Shown: positions 9,844-30,117 of the stretch, one piece after another | Layout of the letters: every line of letters starts with the position of its first letter | How positions within the stretch are numbered: the stretch's first letter is position 1 | From: Thalia democratica | Lineage: Eukaryota | Assembly: GCA_965202585.1 (NCBI GenBank) | Contig: OZ241832.1 | Coordinates: 48,670,001 to 48,734,000 of the forward strand | DNA: 64,000 bases | Direction of reading: 5' to 3' | The notes under the pieces: generated by a model | Database searches by the model: none | The model's input: the letters and a program-made list of their open reading frames with translations, nothing else | Told to the model about the DNA's origin: nothing | Made by a program: the position numbers and the translations under genes

Positions 9844-11957
9844 TTAAAAAATCTGTAAACAGCTGAAAGCAGCCAATGCGAGCATAACCAATACTTTGAA
9901 ACTCTTTAACTCGGAACCCGCGGCGCTGAAAAATTTGGTACAGTGGGTGCCGTTGCCCTGGTAACCCTCCGAGCACTCGCACAGGTGGGCCTGCTCGGTG
10001 CTGTACTTGACGCAGGTGGCGTCGTCGTGGCAAAACTGCCCCTGGGCCTCGCAAGCCTGGTTGCCCACGCATGAATTGGGCAAGCGGCAGTTGACGGTCC
10101 TTGTCAATGAGTCCTGACAGACGGCTCCTTCGCACGTTCGCATGTCCTCCCTCTTTCCCACCCCGCACTCGCCCTTGCACTCTCCCAAGACCCAGTCGCT
10201 GTAGTCGGGGTTGGCTGAAATTAAATTTAGTTTTTAAATCATTGTCGAAAGAATTTATATAAGGCAAGTTATGTGAGGCTAAATCTAAAATAATCATTTT
10301 AGATAGAGATTCAATTTGAAAAGGATTTTTTATTTAAATACTGACGAGGTTTTTGACCGAAACTAAGTTTGTATAATAAAGTCTTAAAAGAATATAAATA
10401 TAATGCTTTTACTTTAAGTATTTAAACTAAAAAAGCATTAACAAATTAAAATTCTAAGGTTTGAAACCTGTAAATTTAGTGTATTTGTAACGAAAAAAGT
10501 AATACCTATAAGTTATTAATATACTGTACCATTAATATATATAAAAACTGTTAAACACACTGTCTTATATTATTCAAACAAAATACATGTTTCAATTAAA
10601 TAAAGTTTTAGTCAAGTTACTTATATTCTCACTTATTCATAACCAGATAAAACTTCTAACCTACAACTTAATTTTTGAAAGTTATTTGTACCGGAGTTTA
10701 TATGAACTTAAAAAAAAAATTTAAGAGTCAAATAAACTAATCAAAGTATCAAAACCACTTTAAACATATTTCAAATGTGCTCAAAAATTTTTATCATGGA
10801 GAAACATTTAGAACTTTTTAATAAAAAAAATACAAACATTCGTCGTCATACAGCAGCTGGCACTCCTTCCCGTCTCCAGCGTACTCCGGCAGGCACTTGC
10901 ACTCGTAATCGCCACCCAGGTCGCCGGGCAGGCATACGGCGTTCGGCGAGCACTTCAAGTCCCTGCACACGTCCTCGAAGTTCGGGCAAGCCGGCATCGT
11001 GCACTTGGACACCCGGTTCAGCACCACATCCGGTTCGTCGCAGTACGTTTCCAGCACGCACGTCCTCCTGTCCAGCCGCGTCCCCTCGCCGCAACTGACG
11101 CTGCAGTCGCCCGTGACCCACTCGCCGTACCGCATCGTGTCCTTGATCCACCCGACGTACCACGACACCCGCGCGTACACCTCCGGATGCACGAAGCTGT
11201 CGCAGTCGGCCTTAACCCAGCTGGTCACCCCCCTGAGCACAGTCTCGTTCCTGGCGTTGTCGAAGCACGCCAAGGGGCCGCCCGAGTCGCCTTTGCACAC
11301 GGTGATGTACGAGGAGGGCTTGAAGGCGCACACCTGCAGGTCCGTGTGTATTGCAGGTCCCCAAATCTTCTTGCACCTCGTCTCCCCGTAGATGTTCGTC
11401 TCCGCCTTCTGTAGCACTTCCGGGTCTTCCCTCTCGTCCGTTCCGATCTTCGTGTCGCCGAACCCGGCGATGTCGCAAAACTCGTAATCGAAAACCCTGT
11501 CTCTCTTGCTCCTCGGGAGAGCAATTGGCCTCGCTATCTTGTAGAAGAACAAGCTGGTCTTCAGCTTCACCAAGGCGATATCGTTGGGCAGGAAAACGCT
11601 AGTGATCTTCTTATCCTCGGTGTATCCCGGATGCACGAACTTTGCCACGGCGCCCACCCGCTGCTGGTACTTGAGCTTTTGCTGGTCGAGGAAGCCCACG
11701 TGCGCCCAGGTGTTCTTTGGCTCGTGATGCTGGACGCAGTGCGCCGCCGTCAGGATCCAGTGGTGGGCGAGGATGTTGCCGCCGCACCTCTCCGACCCGA
11801 AAAAGAGTATACCGCCCGGAATCACCATCGACATCAACGCATAATAGGGGAATTCCCCAGTCTTGGCATCCGACCCGCTGATGACCCGGTCCCGGATTGG
11901 CTCGCTGGTTGTGGCGGCGGTGAAGGTTAAGATTAAAATACAGAACAACTTGATCAT
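9844..11957 (-). CDS. S1A (trypsin-fold) serine protease with signal peptide, TSP1-EGF-TSP1-EGF and a C-terminal GPI-signal-like tail, 496 aa. Exons 11957-10838 and 10214-9844
   Basis: Catalytic motifs LTAAHC, NDIALVKL and GDSGGP are present, with activation site R|VISG and the four canonical intradomain Cys pairs. Two W..G.C...CG.G.R...R.C TSP1 repeats and two 6-Cys EGF repeats follow. A phase-1 GT-AG intron joins the exons in frame, and the protein ends in a hydrophobic tail. Confidence 0.93.
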
Positions 11958-18500: not shown

Positions 18501-19148
18501 ATGCCTGTGATTAAATGCCCTCTTGAGAGTTGCACATATGAAACAACAGACGTCGATGCTTCTGTATTTGCCTCTTTGCTTATCATTCACAACAATTTTC
18601 ACATTTATGCAAATTCTTCAAAACCAAAGCCTTCAAAGATGGACCGTCCTCGAATAGGGACAGACTGCAATGAAGAGGGTTGGAATATATTTGTACAAAA
18701 GTGGACTATTTTTAAAGATAGCATGGAGATGACAGAGGTAGAAAAAGGCCGTCAACTGTACCAGTGCTGTGAGGAAGATCTAGGCGATGCTATTCTGAAG
18801 GGACATGAAGATGTAGTAAATTTAAGTGAGCAAGAGCTTTTAAGGATGATCAAGCAGCTTGCAGTTGTTCCTGTTTCAGTTGTTGTACGACGATCAGACT
18901 TTCTCAGTGCAAGACAGGATTTGACTGAAAACACTAGATCATTTTCTGCACGTTTGAACGGAAAAGCCAGTACATGCTCGTACACATGTAAATGCCCAAA
19001 GGATGGCTGTAATCAAATGATAGATTTTACAGACATAATCCTAAATGATGTCATGGTAACAGGTTTAGCTGATGAGGATATCCGTAAAGAAGTGCTAGGA
19101 TGGAAAAATCTAGATGAGAAAAATGTCAATGAGACAATCGGTTATTGA
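18501..19148 (+). pseudogene. Gag-like ORF of the LTR element (frameshifted at its end)
   Basis: MPVIKCP..C.Y.T.D...ASLL.IH, followed by RQD..E..RSFSARLNGKA..C and GLADEDIRKEVLG, resembles invertebrate gypsy gag. The ORF ends prematurely at ETIGY*, with I-E-G-K-E continuing in another frame. Confidence 0.75.
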
Positions 19149-19849
19149 AGGAAAAGAGATGGCGGTGATGCAATGTCAAAACCCGCTGTTACAGCCTCAG
19201 TTTTCTCATACAAATCCTCAAAGAAAACCACATGAAAACCAAGTGGTAAAATAACTTGTGGCATATGTAATAAATAAACTGATAAATTTGTTTGGAGCAG
19301 TAAAAATATCAGGTATGTTGAGTGATCTGCCTGTAAACAATGCTGGATAAAGTCCTGTAAAAAAGATTATCAAAGTCACCAAAGTTATGCTGATGAGTCA
19401 AATGCACTTCTAGTTAGTGTATTGTATACACCAAATGTATACAAATCCTTACAGAAAACCACACAAAAACCAAGTGGTAAAATAACTTGTGGCATATGTA
19501 ATAAATCAACTGATAAATTTGTTTGGGGCAGTAAAAATATGATGTATATTGAGTGTTCTGCCTGTAAACAATGCTGGATAAAGTCCCGTAAAAAAGTTTA
19601 TCAAAGTCACCAAAATAATGCTGATGAGTCAAAAGCACTTCTGCTTGGTGGATTATCTACACAAAGTTCTGATAGCTTTTGCATCCGAGGTCGTAGGAAA
19701 AATATGTTCGAGCGTAAAAATGTAAAGAAGAAAAAGGAGGTACAGGGACAGAAAAATGTATTTCTACACACTGGATGGCGACAAAGACCGCACATATCCC
19801 AAAGCAAACCTCACCTACCTCCAAATGATAAGATGTCATTACCTTACGT

Positions 19850-20160
19850 CAGAAAGAGTGTTATGACTTACAATAACCAACAGATCTCAAAAGTGTGGCG
19901 TGACGTTTGGAATAAAAAGGAAGAATCTCTCAGTATTCGTTTTGTTAAGTCTCTGGAAAATATAAGTGAGAAAACAAAATCATTGCCACCACTGAATTGT
20001 GGTGATCATGTCGTGATACTAAATCAAACATGTAACTTTCCTAGCAAGTGGGGAAAAGTGGAGTGGTGGTGGAAGTGAAGGACTGCCATCAATGTGTTGT
20101 CAAGGTTGATAAATCAGGTTGCTAAACTGTTCAAAATAGTAAGTTTTATAAGAAGATTTA
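19850..20160 (+). pseudogene. Integrase C-terminal tail remnant of the LTR element
   Basis: W....EESL..R....L...SEKTKSLPPLNCGDHVVILNQT...PSKW.K, then V.KVD.SG in shifted frames. No protease, RT, RNase H or integrase core found upstream. Confidence 0.7.
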
Positions 20161-22382
20161 TCCCTCCAGTTTGTTAATCTCTAAGTAGTATCCCTTATCT
20201 GAGAAAAGCAAACATACCACGGTAAAAGTTTGTCTTTTCTGGTAAAGTTGAGAAAAAAGATGTCAAGAAAAGTTTTAATGTTCTATGTTATTACAGAAGG
20301 AAGATTCTTTTTTAATAAGCATTGTGTAATTTCCCTCTGTACTAACGGCTTTCTTAAACATTGATGTTGAGCTGGAATGGCTCGGATTTGCTTTGATCAA
20401 TATTTTCTTGACTTATGTTTTCTACAGAAAAGCAAACATACCGCCAAAGTTTATTTGCGTACAAAAATGTGTCCGGGATGAGACTTTATAATGCTTTTCA
20501 AAAGTTTCGTGACACCGATGTTGCTGACATTCATTTATTGTCAAGTTGGAATGTTCACTGTAAATTAATGTTTTATAGTCTAATGAATGAGTTTCAGTCC
20601 AATGGTGACGTCATAAAGTTTTTTGTTGACTTTGCAGCAGACTTGTCTAACAGCCATTTGTTCAAAGTGATCTTGGATGAGGACGCAGAGATTGACTTTC
20701 AAAAATTCGAATAGTTGGTTGGTTTCGAGTATTTGTAAAATAAATGTAGCAGTATTTCGTCAGTGTTTAATGCTATCAGTAGTGCACCTTCTACCTTGTT
20801 TGAAGTCGAAAATATGATAAAGATATTTTTCAACAAATTAAGTGAAGTTTCAAGATAGTTAGATAAATGACGTGTGGTTTCATTCTTCAAAGCTGAAAAG
20901 TTCAAATCGTGAAGCAATTAAGTTTTTAAATGCTTGTATTCAGCGTCTGAGTGAAGAAAAGTAAAGATTAAGTCCCAATTTTTTTGTTACAGTTTGTTTT
21001 TTTAAGTTGTAGTTACTAAGTTAATCGTAATTTTTTAAATGTTTTTGTCTTTTTGAGTTTAATTTCGTTGAATTTTAGACCTGAAAAGTGTGTTTAAGTT
21101 GTAACAATTTGTTTTAAAATTATTTTGTTTCGCTAGGTAAATTTATCGTTTTATCTCCTTTGTAGATAAAATCTGGGGGGAGATGTATAAGTATTTACCT
21201 AGTTTTAATTATGTTTTGTGTTACAGACTTTATCATTCTTGTAATTAGTTTGTGAATAAACTCAACCAAGAAAGATATATTTATTTATCTTTAGACCAGG
21301 TCCTTAGACCAAAACTTTTTTAAGTAACTTGATTTTTTGCTTTGTAATCAGAAAACTATATGTTTAATATATGTCTTTATCAGATTTTTTCAACCATAAT
21401 TGGTTGTGATATCTAAACGGTTAGAATTAAAGTGATTAATTATTTATCAAAATAAGGAAAAAAAGGGTTAGTATAAGTATTTAATTAAAGCATTTCTTCC
21501 AAAAAAACTCTCAAGTTTCAAAAATGGTTCTGTTGAAATCACTAACTGATACCTTTAAGCTAATACAGCTTGACAAAATATCTACATTTTTAATGTTTAG
21601 CTTTTGTTTTTGACAGAAAATATCTAACAAAAAACAGTACAGTTCTATTAATTTGTATAGCAAATAAAATTTATTTAACTAAACTTCTTTTTGATTAAAG
21701 AAACATGTAAAAATACTTAATTGTATTTCTTAAAAATCTCGTTTTTTTTTGCCTAAAGAATATTTTCTACTGTTATAGTTTTATTTATTGAAAAAAAATT
21801 TGCGTCAAACTTTTTGTCTTCAATGTATTTTTTAAATAAAATGAAGGACTGTGAGTTTAAGCATTGTTATAGTTTATCAGTAACTTTGTGCTTGTATGTA
21901 GATTTAAAGCATATTTATTGTAAACACTTGACCTTTCTGCTATCCTTTGTTGATAGTTATTTTTTAGAGAAAAAATATAGTTTGCTACATGAATGTTTAC
22001 AAATGAATAAATATACTACTTCGAAAAACCAACAGGTGTCTTTTAATATGGACGTATTTAATTAATTAATTTTTAGCATGCATTCTTATGAGATATTGTT
22101 AAAAATGATATGTGAAAATTAAAAACTCTTTGTATTTGACAGCTTATAAACAAAAGTAAGTTAATATTAATTTATTTGGTACTTGATTGTACATGTTATA
22201 ACGAAATACCGTGTAAACTAAACCTGAGTTTTGGTTAGTTACCCATAGACAAACTGTTATTTACCAGTTAAGTTACTTTTGATCACAATTAAAAACAGTT
22301 TCTTACAAAGGTTTTCATTAAGAAAGTTTTAAATAAGTCTTTGGTTAATAGTCCTGGTTAAGACATTAAAAGGTTTCCAAAT

Positions 22383-22449
22383 GGTGTGCGACTCGATATC
22401 CGAAAGACTTTTTTATGCACCAGGTCTTAGGACCAAACATTTTGAGCGC
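22383..22449 (+). repeat. Short interspersed repeat GGTGTRYRACTCGA...CACCAGGTCC..GACCAAA..TTTGAGC
   Basis: Related copies at about 42853-42918, about 43505-43560 and about 55969-56018. A further copy is split by the LTR element (18330-18367 plus 21293-21320). Confidence 0.7.
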
Positions 22450-23727
22450 TTTTATTTGTCATTCAATAAACAATAACTAATATGTTTATTGTAAAAGTAG
22501 TTCTACTTTTACTAATGGTCCGAAGCAAAACATTTTTTAAGCAATGTATATTCGGTCGATTTTTAAGAAACTAAAACTATGGCTAAATATAGTACAGAGA
22601 GACTTTTAGTCTTGTGTTTTTTCACACACATCTTACTTAAACATTTCTGTTAAAGCTTAAACTGCAAAAAAATCTATAGAAAATTAGATATATATACAGA
22701 TTATGGTAGACTAATCTTTGAATCAGACTTTTTAAAATGCATCACACAATAAGTATAGCTTTCAAAAGCGGTTTAATAATTTTTCATGTGAAAAAAGTTT
22801 TTAGTTAAATGTTTGTGCATATGAAAGAAATTGTTCTAGATGAAAAAAATTATATTATAATATAAATACCTAAAACAGTTGAATTTTTTTTTAAACTTTC
22901 AAAGCTATAAGAAGCCTACAGAAACTTAAATACTTACTATTAGCTATTTATGAGTCACTTAGTATTTAGACCGTAGTATTCATAACGTCATGTAAGCACC
23001 ACAGTTAAAACGATTTTAGTAATACTACAAGTCGGTCATACTTATTGAATCGAGCCAAAATTGTAATTACGTTCAGCTTTAGAAAAACTTTTATTAATTC
23101 ATTTTAATGTTTTAAACATCTTTATATGAAAAGATAAATTATCTAATTGGCTTGCATAAGACTAAAAACTCTGTAAAAAGTAATTTTAGTTTACTAAGCT
23201 TAACCTCTATTAAAAGCATTTAAAAGATAATTTTTGATGTCAGTGAAGTAGTGTGGAAGGATTAAAATGTATTTTTTTCTTGATTTTTTAAGAAAGTAAA
23301 ATCATAAAAGAATTATAATTAAAATATAAATTAAGTAAGCCTTTGTTCAAGAGACAAAGTAAAACATTTCTAATCAAATTTGAAAAAAGTTAAAACTATT
23401 GGGAGCAGTTTAAAAAAGTTTTTAAACCTATAAAAAAAAAACGTTTAAAATCAAAGGTTCAGAGAACAAAATTAAATTTACTAATGCTATTTCTATAGGT
23501 TTGCAAAAAAAAATACTTATACACTTTAGAGTTTTTCAGATATATTTATATAAATTAAAAGCTAATTTTTATTTGATTAGTGGTCTTTGTATTTAGATTT
23601 TGTAAATTTATTTTTTAGAGAAGTTTGTGACATCTATATTTGTGAAAAAAAATTATAATAAGTAAATAGTTATTGAAAATCAGAAAGAATTTTTTTTGAG
23701 AGTAGAACTCTTTTTATATCATTAAAA

Positions 23728-24462
23728 TATATACCATTTACAACTTGTTATTAACAGATTACTCTTTTTTTTTATATTCTATTTTACAAAGCTTTCAAAA
23801 CTATACTAGTTTCATTCTCAAGTATAAAATGTTAAATGAAATTTGAAAAAAAATTTGGTTAGTAAACAACTTAAAAAATTACTTTAAATTATGACGTATG
23901 AATAAATTCGAGTAACTACAAAATTTGGGATTTAGCAAGTAAAGGTATGTTTATTAATAATTTTGCTTTCTCATTTAATGCTATTTGCGTATTTAACTTA
24001 GGTCGCTCTTCCTCAATCAATATTGATTTCAGGCTGTAGAGTTCGCTTTGTTTACATCTTGTATTTGATTCTATGCTTTTTAATTGCACACCCAGTTAAA
24101 ACTTTAAAGTTTTGAAACGATGTAAACAAAGCGAACTCTACAGCCTGGAATCAATATTGATTGAGGAAGAGCGACCTAAGTTAAATACGCAAATAACATT
24201 AAATGGAAAAGCAAAATTACTAAAAAATTATTAATAAACATACCTTTACTTGCTAAATCTCTAAATTTTGTATTTACTTGAATTTATTCATACGTCATAA
24301 TTTAAAGTAATTTTTTAAGCTGTTTACTAACTAATTTTTTTTTAAATTTCATTTAACATTTACCACTTGAGAATGAAACTAGTATAGTTTTGAAAAGCTT
24401 TGTAAAATAAAGTATAAAACAAAATGAGTAATCTGTTAATAATAAGTTGCAAATGGTATATA
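23728..24462. repeat. Large fold-back (about 330-340 bp inverted arms, about 60 bp spacer); MITE/foldback element or hairpin locus
   Basis: About 23728-24059 is the reverse complement of about 24119-24462, with scattered substitutions and small indels. Termini are TATATACCATTT / AAATGGTATATA. Confidence 0.9.
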
Positions 24463-25897
24463 AGTACGTTCAAAAACCTTCCTATGTTAGTATTTAAAAA
24501 GCTATATAGTTTTTGAGTTTATACTTAAACAGTAATTCTTTAGTAGTTTCAGAAATACAAATACCTATAAAGAAATAAAGTTTTCAGTCAAATACTAGAG
24601 ACAAGTTTTAAAAACCTATAAAAAAGTTGATAAAAAAATAATTTCACTTTTCTTGCTTATTATAAGTAAACATAATACAATATAATAAACACGACTATTG
24701 TCATTACAACCTCTCTACACATTTAAAAAATGTATTTTGTGCATTTAATTTTGTCTAGCTTAAATTGTTGATTTGTATACTTATATAAAGTTTAAAAATA
24801 AAGTTTGTTGTTTACTATAACTTAGTAGTTTTGAGCATAATCGATAAGAAAAATATTTAACAACTCATATATATATATTCTTTTAAGTATTTCTACATTT
24901 TTAAACTGTTTTATAAGTTCTTCAACTCAAATCAATTTTTTTATTTAACTGATAAACTTGAAACTTTTTGGAATTTTTTTTTGTGTTACAAAACATATAA
25001 AATAATTAAGCCATTTTATAGTTTAGGGCTAAATATTTGTACAGTTTTAAAATACTAACGGCATAATCTACAAATAACCTTACAAGCACGAATTTCGTGC
25101 CTGAAACTGTAAAAACTTAAATATATTCTTTTAGAAAAATTCATTAATCACAACTCTAAACAACTATTGCTTAAAGGTATTAAGCGTGTATATGTTTTTT
25201 GCTGTTTAAAAAGTGTAGCATTTTAATTATTTAAAATTAGCAGCTTTATTCTATTAGTAAAGGGTGCTTCTAAATATTTTTGTATTTAAAATAAATTTGG
25301 TCCATTTCACAGAAGCTTTTGCCAAAATAAACTTGTACTTATAAAAATAAATGCATAAAAATTTTTTGTACTTACTAAGTACATTTTTTTTTTCATTAAA
25401 ATATAGTTTAAGATTTGACGAATGTATCTAAACACAGTTGACAAAAGATAGACAAAAGTTGACTAAAATTTTTGACATATCCTGTACTAAGTTATAGTTA
25501 CATTACAGTTTGAACAAAAAAATTTAAAGCTTAAAGTTATACATTTGAAGCTTAAAGTTAATCATACATACTTTTTACTCTAAATGTTTATACCGATTTC
25601 TTAAAATATGTTAGAGTTTAAATGTAAATATTGTACTAGTAACTAGTTATTTTATTGTATTGTCTAGCACTGTTAACAAAAGGTCTTTTTGAAAATCAGC
25701 TCCTTTGACCATTTTTTAAAACGTCTATTTCTTTATCGTGTTCAATAAAATACTAAATATGATACAAAAATTACCTTTACTTGAACTTTATACTGAAAGA
25801 CACATCAAACAATAAAAATGTATGTATATTAACATGCATTTGGTGTATTATAAAAATGACATTTGTTTTAAAACTAACAAGATTATTAAAAAAAATA

Positions 25898-27502
25898 ATG
25901 GAAGAGGATAAGAAATACTATCAAATCACATTAATTGGTGAAAATTGTGAAAGTAGAAGAAGTCTGATGAGAAAGTTCATTGGAAGCAATGTTGGTAAAA
26001 TCTTAAACTTCATTACTTTTTTGTTGTTTATTAAAGCCACTTTAAAATATAGTTCAGGATAATAAGAAGTCGTAAACACTATATTTCAAGAAGTTTTACA
26101 GCCAATCAGAGTAAACTAGTATACAAAAAAAATACTTTTATCAACCACTAAACTGTTGTTTCAGTCTAGCTAACTTTATTCCTTTGAAAACAACAACTTA
26201 GCTCCCAACTTTTAAAAACAAAAGAATATACTAACTCAAACATGAACCAGTTTAAAACAACTTATATTGTCAATTTTAGCCGCAGACGATAAACCTGTTC
26301 GACCAGTTCTGCTACACGGAGCAGCCGACCAGGTACGGAAAGCTGCACCTCAAGTACCTCGTCCAGGACAGGAAGAAGCAGTTGGAGCAGGTGCAATCCA
26401 CAAAGTACCTGCAAGACACCCACATTCACCTGGCCTGCTTCGATTTGAACAACCGCAATTCGTTCGACACCGTTCGCGAAATAAGGTTCGTGCTTGTCAG
26501 AAGTTCGCTTGACTTAGCTGTTCACTCAAGCGTGTTCTACTTTGTTTTAAAGAATATCAAAATATAAAAGTTTAGTATTCTTCTAAAACAGTAAGAAAAA
26601 GCTGTGAAAACGAAATCTTTTCTTTTTTTATCGTGTGGACTTGATCAAAAAAATTTTAGTTTATTTAATCTTAAAGTTGTGTTAACATTTAACCTGATTA
26701 TAATTTCGCAGGAGGAAGCTGTTCCGAATGAACTTCGACCATGAGATGAAGGACCGCATGCGGCAGAACTTCATCATCGTCGGGATCAGGAGCGAGCCGT
26801 CAGCTTCAACAAGCTCCGCGCAAGAAGACCAAGATCCCAACGATTTTTTTTCCGACTCCAGCTCGCTGGCTTCTTCCAGCTACGAAACCGCCGCTTCGCA
26901 CTGCACTTGCAGCTCGGAAGGCAGACCCTGCTGGAGGGTCCAACAGCAGCAGGAGCTGCAGGACGAACGGAAGGAAGATGAGGAAGAGGAGGATAAGGAG
27001 ACGGAGGAGCTGAGGAAGAAGCAGGAAGAGGAGAACAACAAGATCACCAAGCAGGACGTAAAGATCATCAAGAGGAAGTGGAAGAGCGTTTACTACGAGG
27101 TCAACCTGGAGGACACCAACTGCTTGGGCACAAAAAAAGTAGGTTGAGTTCGATACGTTTAATTTTCAAACGTTTTCAAAAGAGAAATTCAATGTAATAA
27201 ACTAGATAGATTTTTTAATTATACATTCTTTTAAGAAATTGACCAACAAAACTCACTTTTTTTATTCTAGCTTGAGTAGCCAACAGCTTGTCACAAAGCC
27301 TTACAACACGCTAACATTTAATTTTCTTCGGATATAAGTTTACAAAAATGCTTCAAGTCTTGCTTCATCATACCTTTTATAAACTTTACAGCTCTACGCG
27401 GACATGATAGGAAGGCTGGTCTACTTGACCCAGAGCCCGTTCCAGTACTTGTGCTCCTCAATCTTGCCAGGCTGCACCGCTTTGCCGGATTTCAACTCTT
27501 AA
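25898..27502 (+). CDS. Rho-fold small-GTPase-like protein lacking G1/G3/G4 motifs (putative pseudo-GTPase), about 278 aa. Exons 25898-25990, 26280-26485, 26712-27138, 27392-27502
   Basis: Four exons splice in frame (phases 0,2,0) to a TAA stop. The order of segments follows Rho: QITLIG, T.NLFDQF, Y.QDTHIHLACFDLNNRNSFDTV, FIIVG, YYEV, LYADMIGRL. The Rho assignment comes from remembered alignments, not a search. Confidence 0.75.
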
Positions 27503-28107
27503 GTGACTTTAAAATGAAGAGCTCAAAGTTAACAGATGTTTTCCGTCCTTTTTTATTTTTCCTCTCAGCTTGTTTAAACAAATTCAAACTATGAGAGAAA
27601 CATACCATGAAGTCAACATTTGATACTACATTTTACTTATTTTAACTTAATATCAGTTATCATTTAAATGTTATTTTCAGTTTCTTAAAAAAACTTCTAA
27701 TTACTGATAGTATCTTTTTTAGTTTTTTTGTTAGTTAAACTAAATTTTCAATAAGTAAAAATTTCAATTTAGTATGTTTTTTAAATGTAACAATTTACGA
27801 CTTTCTTTATAAGTTCAGTTTATAAAAAGTATTTCGTCAGTTAATTTAAAAAGACATTGATATTAGAGTGGGTAATTTTTATATAAAAGTTAACAAAAGT
27901 TACTAAATCATAAAAAAAAAACTTTAAATAAGTTTCAAACACAGTGTTGATCATAAGAGCACAACATTTTTTATAAACATGAAACATATAAATACAGTAT
28001 ATGGTAAAAATTTTAAAAATAAAAAAATATGGTAAATACTTTCATTGGCCAGTAAACAAAATATCACTCTACAATTATAAAGATAACAAAAGATATTTAA
28101 AATAATA

Positions 28108-29289
28108 CTATTCCAGTTTAAAAATCCGTTTACTAACTTCGTTTTTGTCTCTTATAATAGAAAAAGTTTTATAAACGTTTTCACTGAATTTATTTTCTTC
28201 AGAAAAAATGCTTTTATCAATTTTAGATTTTGGGCTTCCTTTGGACGTTAACCAGTTTTTGCTGCAAATTTGAAGTTTATGTTAACATCACCAGCTTAGT
28301 TTTTATAAAAATTCAAAATCCTCAAAGTAAAATTTTTTTGTCACAAAAAAAAATTACTGAGAAAGTTTATTCTAATTTTAATTATACTTAAAATAACAAA
28401 CGTACATTTTTATCACGGCTTCACTTTTGCATTCAACTTGGCCCTGGACAGTTCCGTGTGGCGTGTTGAGAACCCAACCTGTTGCTCCGTTCCTATCACA
28501 CATCTCCTTCGTTCTCTGTTGTGAAGTTGCATTGATTACAAGAACTGTTAATTGAAAAAAAAAGTTTAATGACTTTAAAGAACTGATCAAGTCAATTGAA
28601 TATCTTCAACATATATCTTAAACAAGTTGAAAAACTAGGGAAACAAGTTTAACTGTTAATAAATTGCTTTTTTTTAAATACCTTTTATACACTTCTACTT
28701 AGCTTGAGTTTTTTAAAACGCTTTAAAACTTTTTAGGATTGGTAACAACTTTATCATTAGCCTCAAAAACATGTAGAAATATTACCAAGCGTTAACAATA
28801 AGTACTAGTTTTCGAATTAAATTAAAAACAGTTTGTTAAGTTAGAGAGATGTAATATTTACAGTTATGATACAAATAGCTCCATTTCGTAGCGGCGTGAA
28901 AGTGAGTTAGATAGCATTATAATGTTTATTGTGCAATGATGAAAAATAAAAACTAATATAATTTTCAATCTTATTTCTATTCACTAAAAAAAACTATTTC
29001 TTGGACTTCAATGCTCTGTTCTATAGACAAAATTACAAAGTGAAAAAATTAATAAAACAATACACCAATGAGAAATTTTTTTTTTTGATTGTTAGTACAA
29101 TAAAAAAACAACAAGTTATTTTTTTTTTATCGTTTAAAATAAATTTAAGTACAACATTGTGTAGATATTTAAAGTTGAGTTAAAAAAATTATTAAAAATG
29201 ATATCATCAAAAACAACCTTTCTGAAAAAAACTCCTTGAACTTTTCCATAGACTTCAAACTTAAAACGAACCCATTCATTTTCAGCCAT
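28108..29289 (-). CDS. ACYP: Acylphosphatase, 111 aa. Exons 29289-29218, 28515-28406, 28261-28108
   Basis: Motifs FEVYGKVQGVFFRK (catalytic Arg), GWVLNTPHGTVQGQ (catalytic Asn) and WL...GSPKSKID. The junctions are in frame (phases 0 and 2). Confidence 0.93.
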
Positions 29290-29784
29290 TTAGAATTTTA
29301 TTAGAATAAATTAAAGTAAGTTCTGTATATAAAACTCGAAGGTAGCAAAACTAGGAACACAGTATTTTTGAATTCGTTAAAAGTAGTAATAACTAAAAAA
29401 AATAGCAAAAATTTAAGTTAAACTTATAAACAAGAAAATTAAATATTCTAGAGCAGTATTTTTTGAATTGTTTGACAATAGTTGTAACAAAAAATCAACA
29501 AATTAAAAATAAAAGATTGAATAATGAAAAAAAATTAAATACTATACTTTGAACTAATGAAAAATATTTGATTTACTTTGATAAACAACATAAAAATTAA
29601 AAAAACAAACTAAGCATATTTTAAGTTATTTTTATTATTATTGATAAAACATCATAGAAGAATATTTAAACAAAAATAAATCTTAAAATGAGTTTTATAC
29701 TTGTGAACTAGTTTATCAAAGAAACTGAATTACTCTAAAAACTTTATACTTAAGATCTGTAACAGTATTGTTAATGCCTTTTTT

Positions 29785-30117
29785 TAGGGTTGCCACAGGT
29801 TTTTTGAAAAAATTTCTCTAGATTTTCTGAATTTTTTTCCAGATTTTCAAAAGAACAAGTTTTTTAGTCCATTTTCATTTAAAAAATTTATTTTAAGGCA
29901 AAAAACTGAATTAAATAGTACAACAACATCTTAAAGAAACTGTAAAACTACTTTAAATGTGTTGTTAATTAAAAATTACTTCTAATGATTGATTTTGTAG
30001 TATTTAATTGAAATTTTATTACTTTACATGTAAAAGTAGTTTAAAATTCCAAGTTTTTCAGGTTTTTTTCAAAGTTTTTGAAATTACAGGTTTTTTCAGT
30101 CTTTTTTGGCAACCCTG
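29785..30117. mobile_element. 333-bp MITE with TAGGGTTGCCA / TGGCAACCCTG termini (hAT-like)
   Basis: 11-bp TIRs with 1 mismatch and internal CAGGTTTTTT repeats. No clear TSD. Confidence 0.6.

Follow-up and report, generated by a model that had tools for sequence, protein, structure and literature searches.

The window analysed here is a 64,000-nucleotide stretch of the Thalia democratica genome (assembly GCA_965202585.1, contig OZ241832.1, positions 48,670,001 to 48,734,000 of the forward strand), and the gene of interest occupies its positions 25,898 to 27,502 on the plus strand. The gene is single-copy in the 802-Mb genome and encodes a 278-residue protein. Sequence comparison and structural modelling suggest that this protein is a stand-alone descendant of the Ras superfamily that retains the G-domain fold and most likely neither binds nor cycles nucleotide, a reading to which we assign a probability of about 0.58. 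Such proteins are termed class i pseudo-GTPases, defined by a G-domain fold with degraded motifs and no nucleotide binding, and act through protein contacts (PMC5593906 Table 2; PMC12490416). An earlier note on the locus had proposed a clean four-exon open reading frame (ORF), which is borne out by the joints of spliced RNA contigs, by the blocks into which a sister-species complementary DNA (cDNA) falls on its genome, and by the pattern of substitutions. The coding model of four exons is confirmed, and the protein stands alone. The parts of the gene are as follows:

25898..25990, plus strand: coding exon 1, residues 1-31 (beta1, P-loop remnant, alpha1), AT-rich, with a GC content at third codon positions (GC3) of 0.32
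25991..26279, plus strand: intron 1, 289 nt, GTTGGT..TTTTAG, GC content 0.27, phase 0 after codon 31
26280..26485, plus strand: coding exon 2, residues 32-100 (switch I region, beta2, beta3, switch II remnant, beta4, start of alpha3), GC3 0.84
26486..26711, plus strand: intron 2, 226 nt, GT..AG, phase 2 within the codon of Arg100
26712..27138, plus strand: coding exon 3, residues 100-242 (alpha3, extra helix, beta5, insert, alpha4, beta6)
27139..27391, plus strand: intron 3, 253 nt, GTAGGT..TTACAG
27392..27502, plus strand: coding exon 4, residues 243-278 (alpha5 and tail), followed by the stop codon TAA
27503..27608, plus strand: 3' untranslated region (UTR), at least to 27608 (RNA contigs reach 27593-27604, and similarity to the 3' UTR of sister-species transcript L011 extends to 27608)

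Spliced RNA contigs from three marine metatranscriptome runs of two studies contain the joints of exons 2/3 and 3/4, both of which are GT..AG: 26485|26712 is seen in RNA contigs X1 and X2, and 27138|27392 in X1, X2 and X5. The runs with matches to the window are marine metatranscriptomes and DNA runs of two organisms, and the depth of the RNA contigs over the gene is low. Because these contigs cover exons 2 to 4 and none covers exon 1, the latter was tested by cross-species comparison. Against genomic contigs of the sister species (L003, L004), the proposed frame makes nine of its ten substitutions synonymous, and the frame of exon 2 is fixed by the same kind of pattern; transcript L011 falls on L003 in four blocks with boundaries homologous to those of the window; the transcript-derived proteins P0006 and P0007 read ...FIG[SK]N|[PK]Q... 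across the exon 1/2 joint; and exon-1 ORFs from three taxa (P0008-P0010) continue into the intron straight after Asn31. A stronger-looking donor for exon 1 (G|GTAAAA, phase 1, at 25994) was rejected, as the frame that it imposes on exon 2 disagrees with the substitutions and with the ortholog transcripts. Full-length transcripts of two related species (L011 and L010) support the start and stop codons; in each, an in-frame stop precedes the ATG and a second stop follows exon 4. Because stops flank the ORF in both, the protein is a stand-alone one with no BTB domain after it, as the earlier note had maintained; the RNA contigs likewise run through the stop into the 3' UTR, and Pfam gives no BTB match. 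At 26970-27270, one contig from the RNA library of run X3 continues across the end of exon 3 into intron 3 without splicing; it shows five differences and one extra base, and may reflect carried-over DNA or intron retention in a close relative.

A search of transcriptomes for orthologs, which the earlier note had proposed, yields both full-length transcripts: L011:34-867 encodes a 277-residue ortholog from the sister species that is 89.5% identical to the window protein, and L010:61-900 encodes a distant ortholog (P0006) of 279 residues and 62% identity. These two orthologs were used in place of the window protein for the fold, Pfam and profile searches. They were reached through a protein search with exon 3, which found the homologs P0001-P0004. 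One of these, P0003, lacks 21 residues (L010 codons 63-83, comprising switch II and beta4); the gap is probably an artefact, because a 9-nt direct repeat (TCAGTTGAA) lies at its borders in the full-length transcript, and an isoform was rejected since a reverse transcription/template-switch or assembly artefact is more probable.

Members of the family have so far been found in only three marine plankton taxa, which are related to one another. An exhaustive phmmer search with exon 2 against 1.84 billion representatives returns only the family (P0003) and a bacterial cadherin-repeat adhesin (P0005), which was rejected as a relative, its repeated QICYTPNPNYNGKDT motif being a chance look-alike. 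A profile search of 5.8 billion proteins returns family members only, and two scans of metagenome contigs return no relative. Antibody heavy chains (E >= 0.09), the sole matches in a phmmer search of PDB with P0003, were dismissed as spurious. No named relative appears in any protein or profile search run, and to that extent the suggestion of a possibly undescribed family is supported.

The G motifs are degenerate. The earlier note had read G1, G3 and G4 as lost, and the stretches that it quoted lie where it placed them; together with G5, they are:

25937..25963, plus strand: degenerate G1/P-loop GENCESRRS, residues 14-22; Ras G15, K16 and S17 correspond to S19, R20 and R21 in the K-Ras profile alignment
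26355..26378, plus strand: degenerate G3 YLVQDRKK, residues 57-64; Ras D57, G60 and Q61 correspond to Q60, K63 and K64 in the K-Ras alignment
26782..26796, plus strand: degenerate G4 GIRSE, residues 124-128; I, R and E occupy the positions of Ras N116, K117 and D119
27097..27111, plus strand: degenerate G5 EVNLE, residues 229-233, for Ras ETSAK; it follows beta6 in the model and was mapped by pattern

Each of the patterns GxxxxGK[ST] (P-loop), DxxG(Q), [NT]KxD and SA[KL] fails in the window protein, and the loss of G1, G3 and G4, and of G5 as well, is found again in both orthologs, the distant one reading GENGIGRRN (G1), VQDRNT (G3), IKNE (G4) and VNLD (G5). Because this loss is shared with an ortholog at which synonymous sites are saturated, it is old and common to the family. 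Among the orthologs, G3 is conserved as YLVQDRN/K and the Arg-Arg of the P-loop is invariant; the interior of the loop varies (NCES vs NGIG) while its flanks are invariant, which is unlike a phosphate-binding loop. As for the threonine of G2, Thr34 is present in the window protein and the L011 ortholog, P0006 has Ile, and the profile alignment does not put Thr34 on Ras T35.

Several methods nevertheless point to the Ras superfamily in spite of the degraded motifs. The only Pfam domain matched by the orthologs is Ras (PF00071; P0006 scores 19.6 bits, E 7e-4, and the L011 protein 16.9 bits, E 5e-3), with E-values that suggest homology, and exon 2 alone gives a weak match to the same domain (E 0.078). 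A family profile compared with all PDB sequences finds K-Ras first (E 0.02) and Rab next, aligned from beta1 to G4, and the top clusters of ESM features are all of the Ras family (score 0.94, 175 shared features). The AlphaFold2 (AF2) model of the L011 ortholog (m73a1b88a7ae7, in which numbering is one residue lower in the C-terminal half owing to a gap) has a mean predicted local distance difference test (pLDDT) score of 65, with 70-86 in the core, and the topology b1-a1-b2-b3-a2-b4-a3-(extra helix)-b5-insert-a4-b6-a5, as in solved G domains. The Foldseek comparison that the earlier note had suggested as a check gives the Ras-like match that it expected: with this model as query, at least 500 PDB chains are found at E <= 1e-3, the best at approximately 5e-7 with template modelling (TM) scores by target of 0.6-0.69, the top chains being K-, H- and N-Ras, R-Ras2, Rheb, Ypt7 and Rab9. 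In a search of Swiss-Prot models, the same query finds Rab11, Rit1, Rab9 and Rab7 first. VIA-align over 48,161 representative chains gives Z scores of 14.3-11 over 150-167 residues, nearly all to GTPase G domains, and an atlas shape search returns Ras families only. At the level of the predicted structure, retention of the Ras-superfamily G-domain fold is thus confirmed.

To this fold the protein adds a long insert, which the earlier note had put at about 80 residues in the place of the Rho insert helix; it has 81 residues and lies in the beta5-alpha4 loop of the ortholog model:

26797..27039, plus strand: residues 129-209, the 81-residue insert of the beta5-alpha4 loop; disordered and Ser-rich at first, then an acidic charged helix
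26845..26892, plus strand: conserved short motif FFSDSSSLASSSYETA within the insert, residues 145-160; shares 12 of its 16 residues with the distant ortholog

The insert is rich in Glu (16), Ser (14), Gln (8) and Asp (7), is 38% identical to that of the distant ortholog, and is modelled in the L011 ortholog with pLDDT of about 33 at residues 130-170 and a helix at 174-207. Within it, FFSDSSSLASSSYETA resembles a short linear motif carried on a disordered loop. The HCTC..PC stretch to which the earlier note drew attention is there but is not conserved; a metal site was rejected, since the distant ortholog keeps the final Cys only. The C-terminus is as that note described it, with two cysteines (Cys263 and Cys270, at positions -16 and -9) in a sequence ending ...CTALPDFNS, and there is no CAAX box because the protein terminates in DFNS. 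The tail motif C-T-A-x-P and the second Cys are conserved.

The placement of the protein within the superfamily is less specific than the Rho assignment of the earlier note. The sequence profile is matched best by K-Ras and Rab, and the structure by Ras, Rab, Rit, Rheb and the G-like domain of AGAP1. In the VIA-align order, the AGAP1 domain (14.3) is followed by Rab28, Rab23, DiRas1, Rab32 and Rab27a at approximately 13.5, and Rac1 (12.3), RhoA (12.1) and Rho1 (11.8) never rise above Ras, Rab and AGAP-like chains; because the differences in score are within the tie range of the tool and Rho never leads, the Rho assignment is not confirmed. None of the searches bears out the reported echoes of RhoBTB (LFDQF, YYEV). 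The protein does resemble the Rho family (Rac1, RhoA, Rho1, RhoH) and RhoBTB in having an insertion at the beta5-alpha4 loop, a beta4 of the LxCF type and an FDxF/Y-like stretch in switch I; however, its insert is approximately six times longer than the Rho helix of about 13 residues and is mostly disordered, in a comparison of length and order. With the Ras family (K-Ras, H-Ras, R-Ras2, Rit1, Rheb), which provides the best profile and Foldseek matches, it shares the order of strands and helices and a similar core size, but it differs in its degenerate G1, G3, G4 and G5, non-conserved G2 Thr, 81-residue beta5-alpha4 insert, extra helix before beta5 and absence of a CAAX box. The top VIA-align match, the GTP-binding-protein-like domain of AGAP1 (PDB 7eb6; Z 14.3 over 156 residues, root-mean-square deviation 3.4), sits in a multidomain ArfGAP protein and is 12% identical, and its lead in Z over Rab28, Rab23 and DiRas1 is less than 1 and amounts to a tie. 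It is disputed whether this domain, which is without several of the G motifs, binds nucleotide (PMC5593906).

Known class i pseudo-GTPases include CENP-M, the pG1 and pG2 domains of p190RhoGAP, and AAGAB (PMC5593906; PMC12490416). A G-domain fold and degraded motifs, two of the features that define the class, are what the K-Ras alignment, the AF2 model, Foldseek and VIA-align find in the present family. The window protein is in these respects like CENP-M, p190RhoGAP pG1/pG2, the N-terminal domain of AAGAB and fungal dynein LIC, and like CENP-M it is a small stand-alone protein, but it has no detectable sequence relation to class i members, none of which is among the VIA-align top 50 of 48,161 chains. 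CENP-M in particular is absent from the PDB sequence matches and from those top 50 representative chains, which is a weak negative. Compared with the known class i members, the Arg-Arg P-loop and the long Ser-rich and acidic insert are the window protein's own.

Comparison with the sister species indicates an overall ratio of nonsynonymous to synonymous substitution rates (dN/dS) of 0.108 at a dS of 0.58. The ratio is lowest in the tail (0.02) and in residues 1-127 (0.037), rises to 0.16 in residues 208-258 and is highest in the insert (0.26). Although synonymous sites are saturated in the comparison with P0006, 74% of the residues in the G-domain parts are still identical.

Under the class i interpretation, the ancestor would have been a Ras-superfamily small GTPase that lost its phosphate-, magnesium- and guanine-binding residues through four replacements: Lys-Ser of the P-loop by Arg-Arg, DxxGQ by QDRKK, NKxD by IRSE, and SAK by NLE. 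What remains may be a constitutive protein-binding module or fixed scaffold, in which the conserved surface of the G domain would provide one binding face and the 81-residue insert, with its conserved Ser-rich motif and charged helix, a second one, possibly regulated by phosphorylation. The conserved C-terminal Cys may be acylated, and the insert and the tail Cys may be added elements for interaction or targeting.

Several observations weigh against this interpretation. Neither ortholog reaches the Pfam gathering score for PF00071 (a cut-off of 21.6 bits). The AF2 model is that of the 89.5%-identical ortholog, built from a six-row alignment, rather than of the window protein, and the first model, of P0006, was poor (mean pLDDT 47.7) and was rejected as evidence of the fold, its Foldseek matches being to Ras only but at E >= 0.05 and TM < 0.4. 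The distant ortholog retains a glycine-rich GxxGxG loop and a Lys at the G4 position; the window protein retains Thr34, and a Glu in place of the G4 Asp. Moreover, the invariant Arg-Arg could hold phosphate, so that atypical binding of a nucleotide or phospho-ligand is conceivable.

One alternative, although unlikely, is that the gene does not represent a new family but is orthologous to one of the known atypical small GTPases of chordates (Rit, RERG, DiRas, RasL12, kappaB-Ras, Rab-like, RhoH), having evolved so fast, in a lineage that itself evolves fast, that divergence of its sequence has hidden the relationship. Tunicates evolve fast, and atypical members are among the structural matches (RERG, RhoH, Rit1, DiRas1, RasL12, Gem, RABL3, kappaB-Ras1) and the ESM feature clusters (Rab-like 3, kappaB-Ras, IFT22). 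The residue aligned to Ras Arg97 is Arg100, the codon of which is interrupted by intron 2 in phase 2; the vertebrate H/K/N-RAS genes have a phase-2 intron in codon 97, and the correspondence is a lead in this direction rather than a test. No candidate stands out among these proteins, however, as their Z scores are tied within approximately 2 units, and neither the exon 2 search of 1.84 billion representatives, with its one spurious adhesin, nor the profile search of 5.8 billion proteins reached beyond the family.

Rather unlikely, in our estimation, is a protein that still binds nucleotide, either as a class ii/iii protein like Rnd or RGK or with altered specificity, in which Arg-Arg holds the phosphates of a locked or slow switch. 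Such a protein would be consistent with the invariance of Arg-Arg at the site of Lys-Ser, the GxxGxG kept in P0006, the basic and acidic residues kept at G4 (I-R/K-x-E), Thr34 in the window species, and the extreme constraint on the G-domain core (dN/dS 0.037). On the other hand, G1, G3, G4 and G5 all deviate at a key residue, and neither the Ser/Thr that binds Mg in G1 nor the DxxG glycine remains; Thr34 is Ile in the distant ortholog; and a P-loop with a variable interior between invariant flanks is not what a phosphate-binding loop would lead one to expect. Far more speculative is a scheme in which a phospho-switch has replaced the GTP switch: the Ser-rich insert motif FSDSSSLASSSYETA, once phosphorylated, would dock in cis into the vestigial Arg-Arg phosphate pocket, so that a kinase, rather than a guanine nucleotide exchange factor (GEF) or GTPase-activating protein (GAP), would toggle the shape of the protein, and the family would be an invention of pelagic tunicates. 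Finally, a decaying or functionless gene, the G motifs of which were lost through decay, is effectively refuted by the selection analysis: every G motif is off consensus in at least one ortholog and RNA contig depth is low, but the ORF is intact in three taxa, the splice sites are conserved, the transcripts are spliced, the G domain is 74% identical to that of an ortholog with saturated synonymous sites, and purifying selection is so strong (dN/dS 0.108 at dS 0.58, core 0.037) that the gene is not decaying.

If the protein is indeed a class i pseudo-GTPase, it joins a small group, as few stand-alone small pseudo-GTPases are known: CENP-M is one, and most of the other named class i examples, such as p190RhoGAP pG1/pG2 and AAGAB, are domains of larger proteins (PMC5593906, PMC12490416). 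Since G1, G3, G4 and G5 are lost yet the core is under strong purifying selection, the family would offer a clear case from nature of the switch fold put to a use other than nucleotide cycling, and the Arg-Arg P-loop and the conserved Ser-rich motif offer concrete, testable hypotheses. The reach of the finding is limited because the family is known only from a non-model plankton lineage, with no partner or phenotype in sight.

The transcript probably begins well upstream of the coding region. The first 12 nt of L011 (AGATGAAGGACT) are absent from the 578 nt that precede exon 1 in L003; in the window, 11 of these 12 nt are matched at 21839-21850, directly followed by GTGAGT. Two features are assigned to this upstream region:

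21839..21850, plus strand: 3' end of a probable non-coding 5' leader exon (AAATGAAGGACT), with the donor GTGAGT at 21851-21856
25874..25881, plus strand: CTAAC branch-point-like element and AG acceptor, conserved as CTAACAAG; the match between L011 and L003 begins exactly after it

Sequence comparison therefore places the start of exon 1 probably at 25882, 16 nt before the ATG, and suggests a fifth, non-coding 5' exon that probably ends at 21850, approximately 4 kb upstream. The leader AAATGAAGGACT holds an upstream ATG that opens an upstream ORF (uORF) of five codons; in the sister species, an overlapping uORF has approximately 27 codons. Between the probable leader and exon 1 lies a nested foldback (23800-24388) with inverted-repeat arms of 45-109 nt that are 92-94% complementary and 60 nt between the innermost arms, which looks like a repeated element of the foldback or miniature inverted-repeat transposable element (MITE) type. 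RNA contigs of run X3 pile up at high depth at 24098-24496. An Rfam search of 22000-30000 gives no match.

The composition of the window is approximately 24% GC with islands of higher GC, and there is a break in GC3 within the gene: exon 1 has 0.32 and exons 2-4 have 0.78-0.84, with 27-29% GC in the introns between them. The enrichment in GC is confined to exons and spares exon 1. The same split is present in the sister species, whereas the distant ortholog is AT-rich throughout (GC3 0.27).

Other loci in the window include three ORFs of 99-218 residues on the plus strand (18501-20714). Pfam finds no domain in them, and the first shows only a weak resemblance to retrotransposon gag in its features (scores 0.79-0.88, leads only); the three ORFs are not part of the gene described here. 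The neighbouring gene on the minus strand (28111-28590) is spliced, with a joint at 28261/28406 that reads CT..AC (GT..AG on the minus strand), and one of its exons matches the Pfam Acylphosphatase domain (E 5.5e-4, 20.6 bits vs a cut-off of 22.5). Also on the minus strand, a GC-rich ORF of 379 residues (10818-11957) contains Trypsin (E 3.7e-37), TSP1 and EGF domains.

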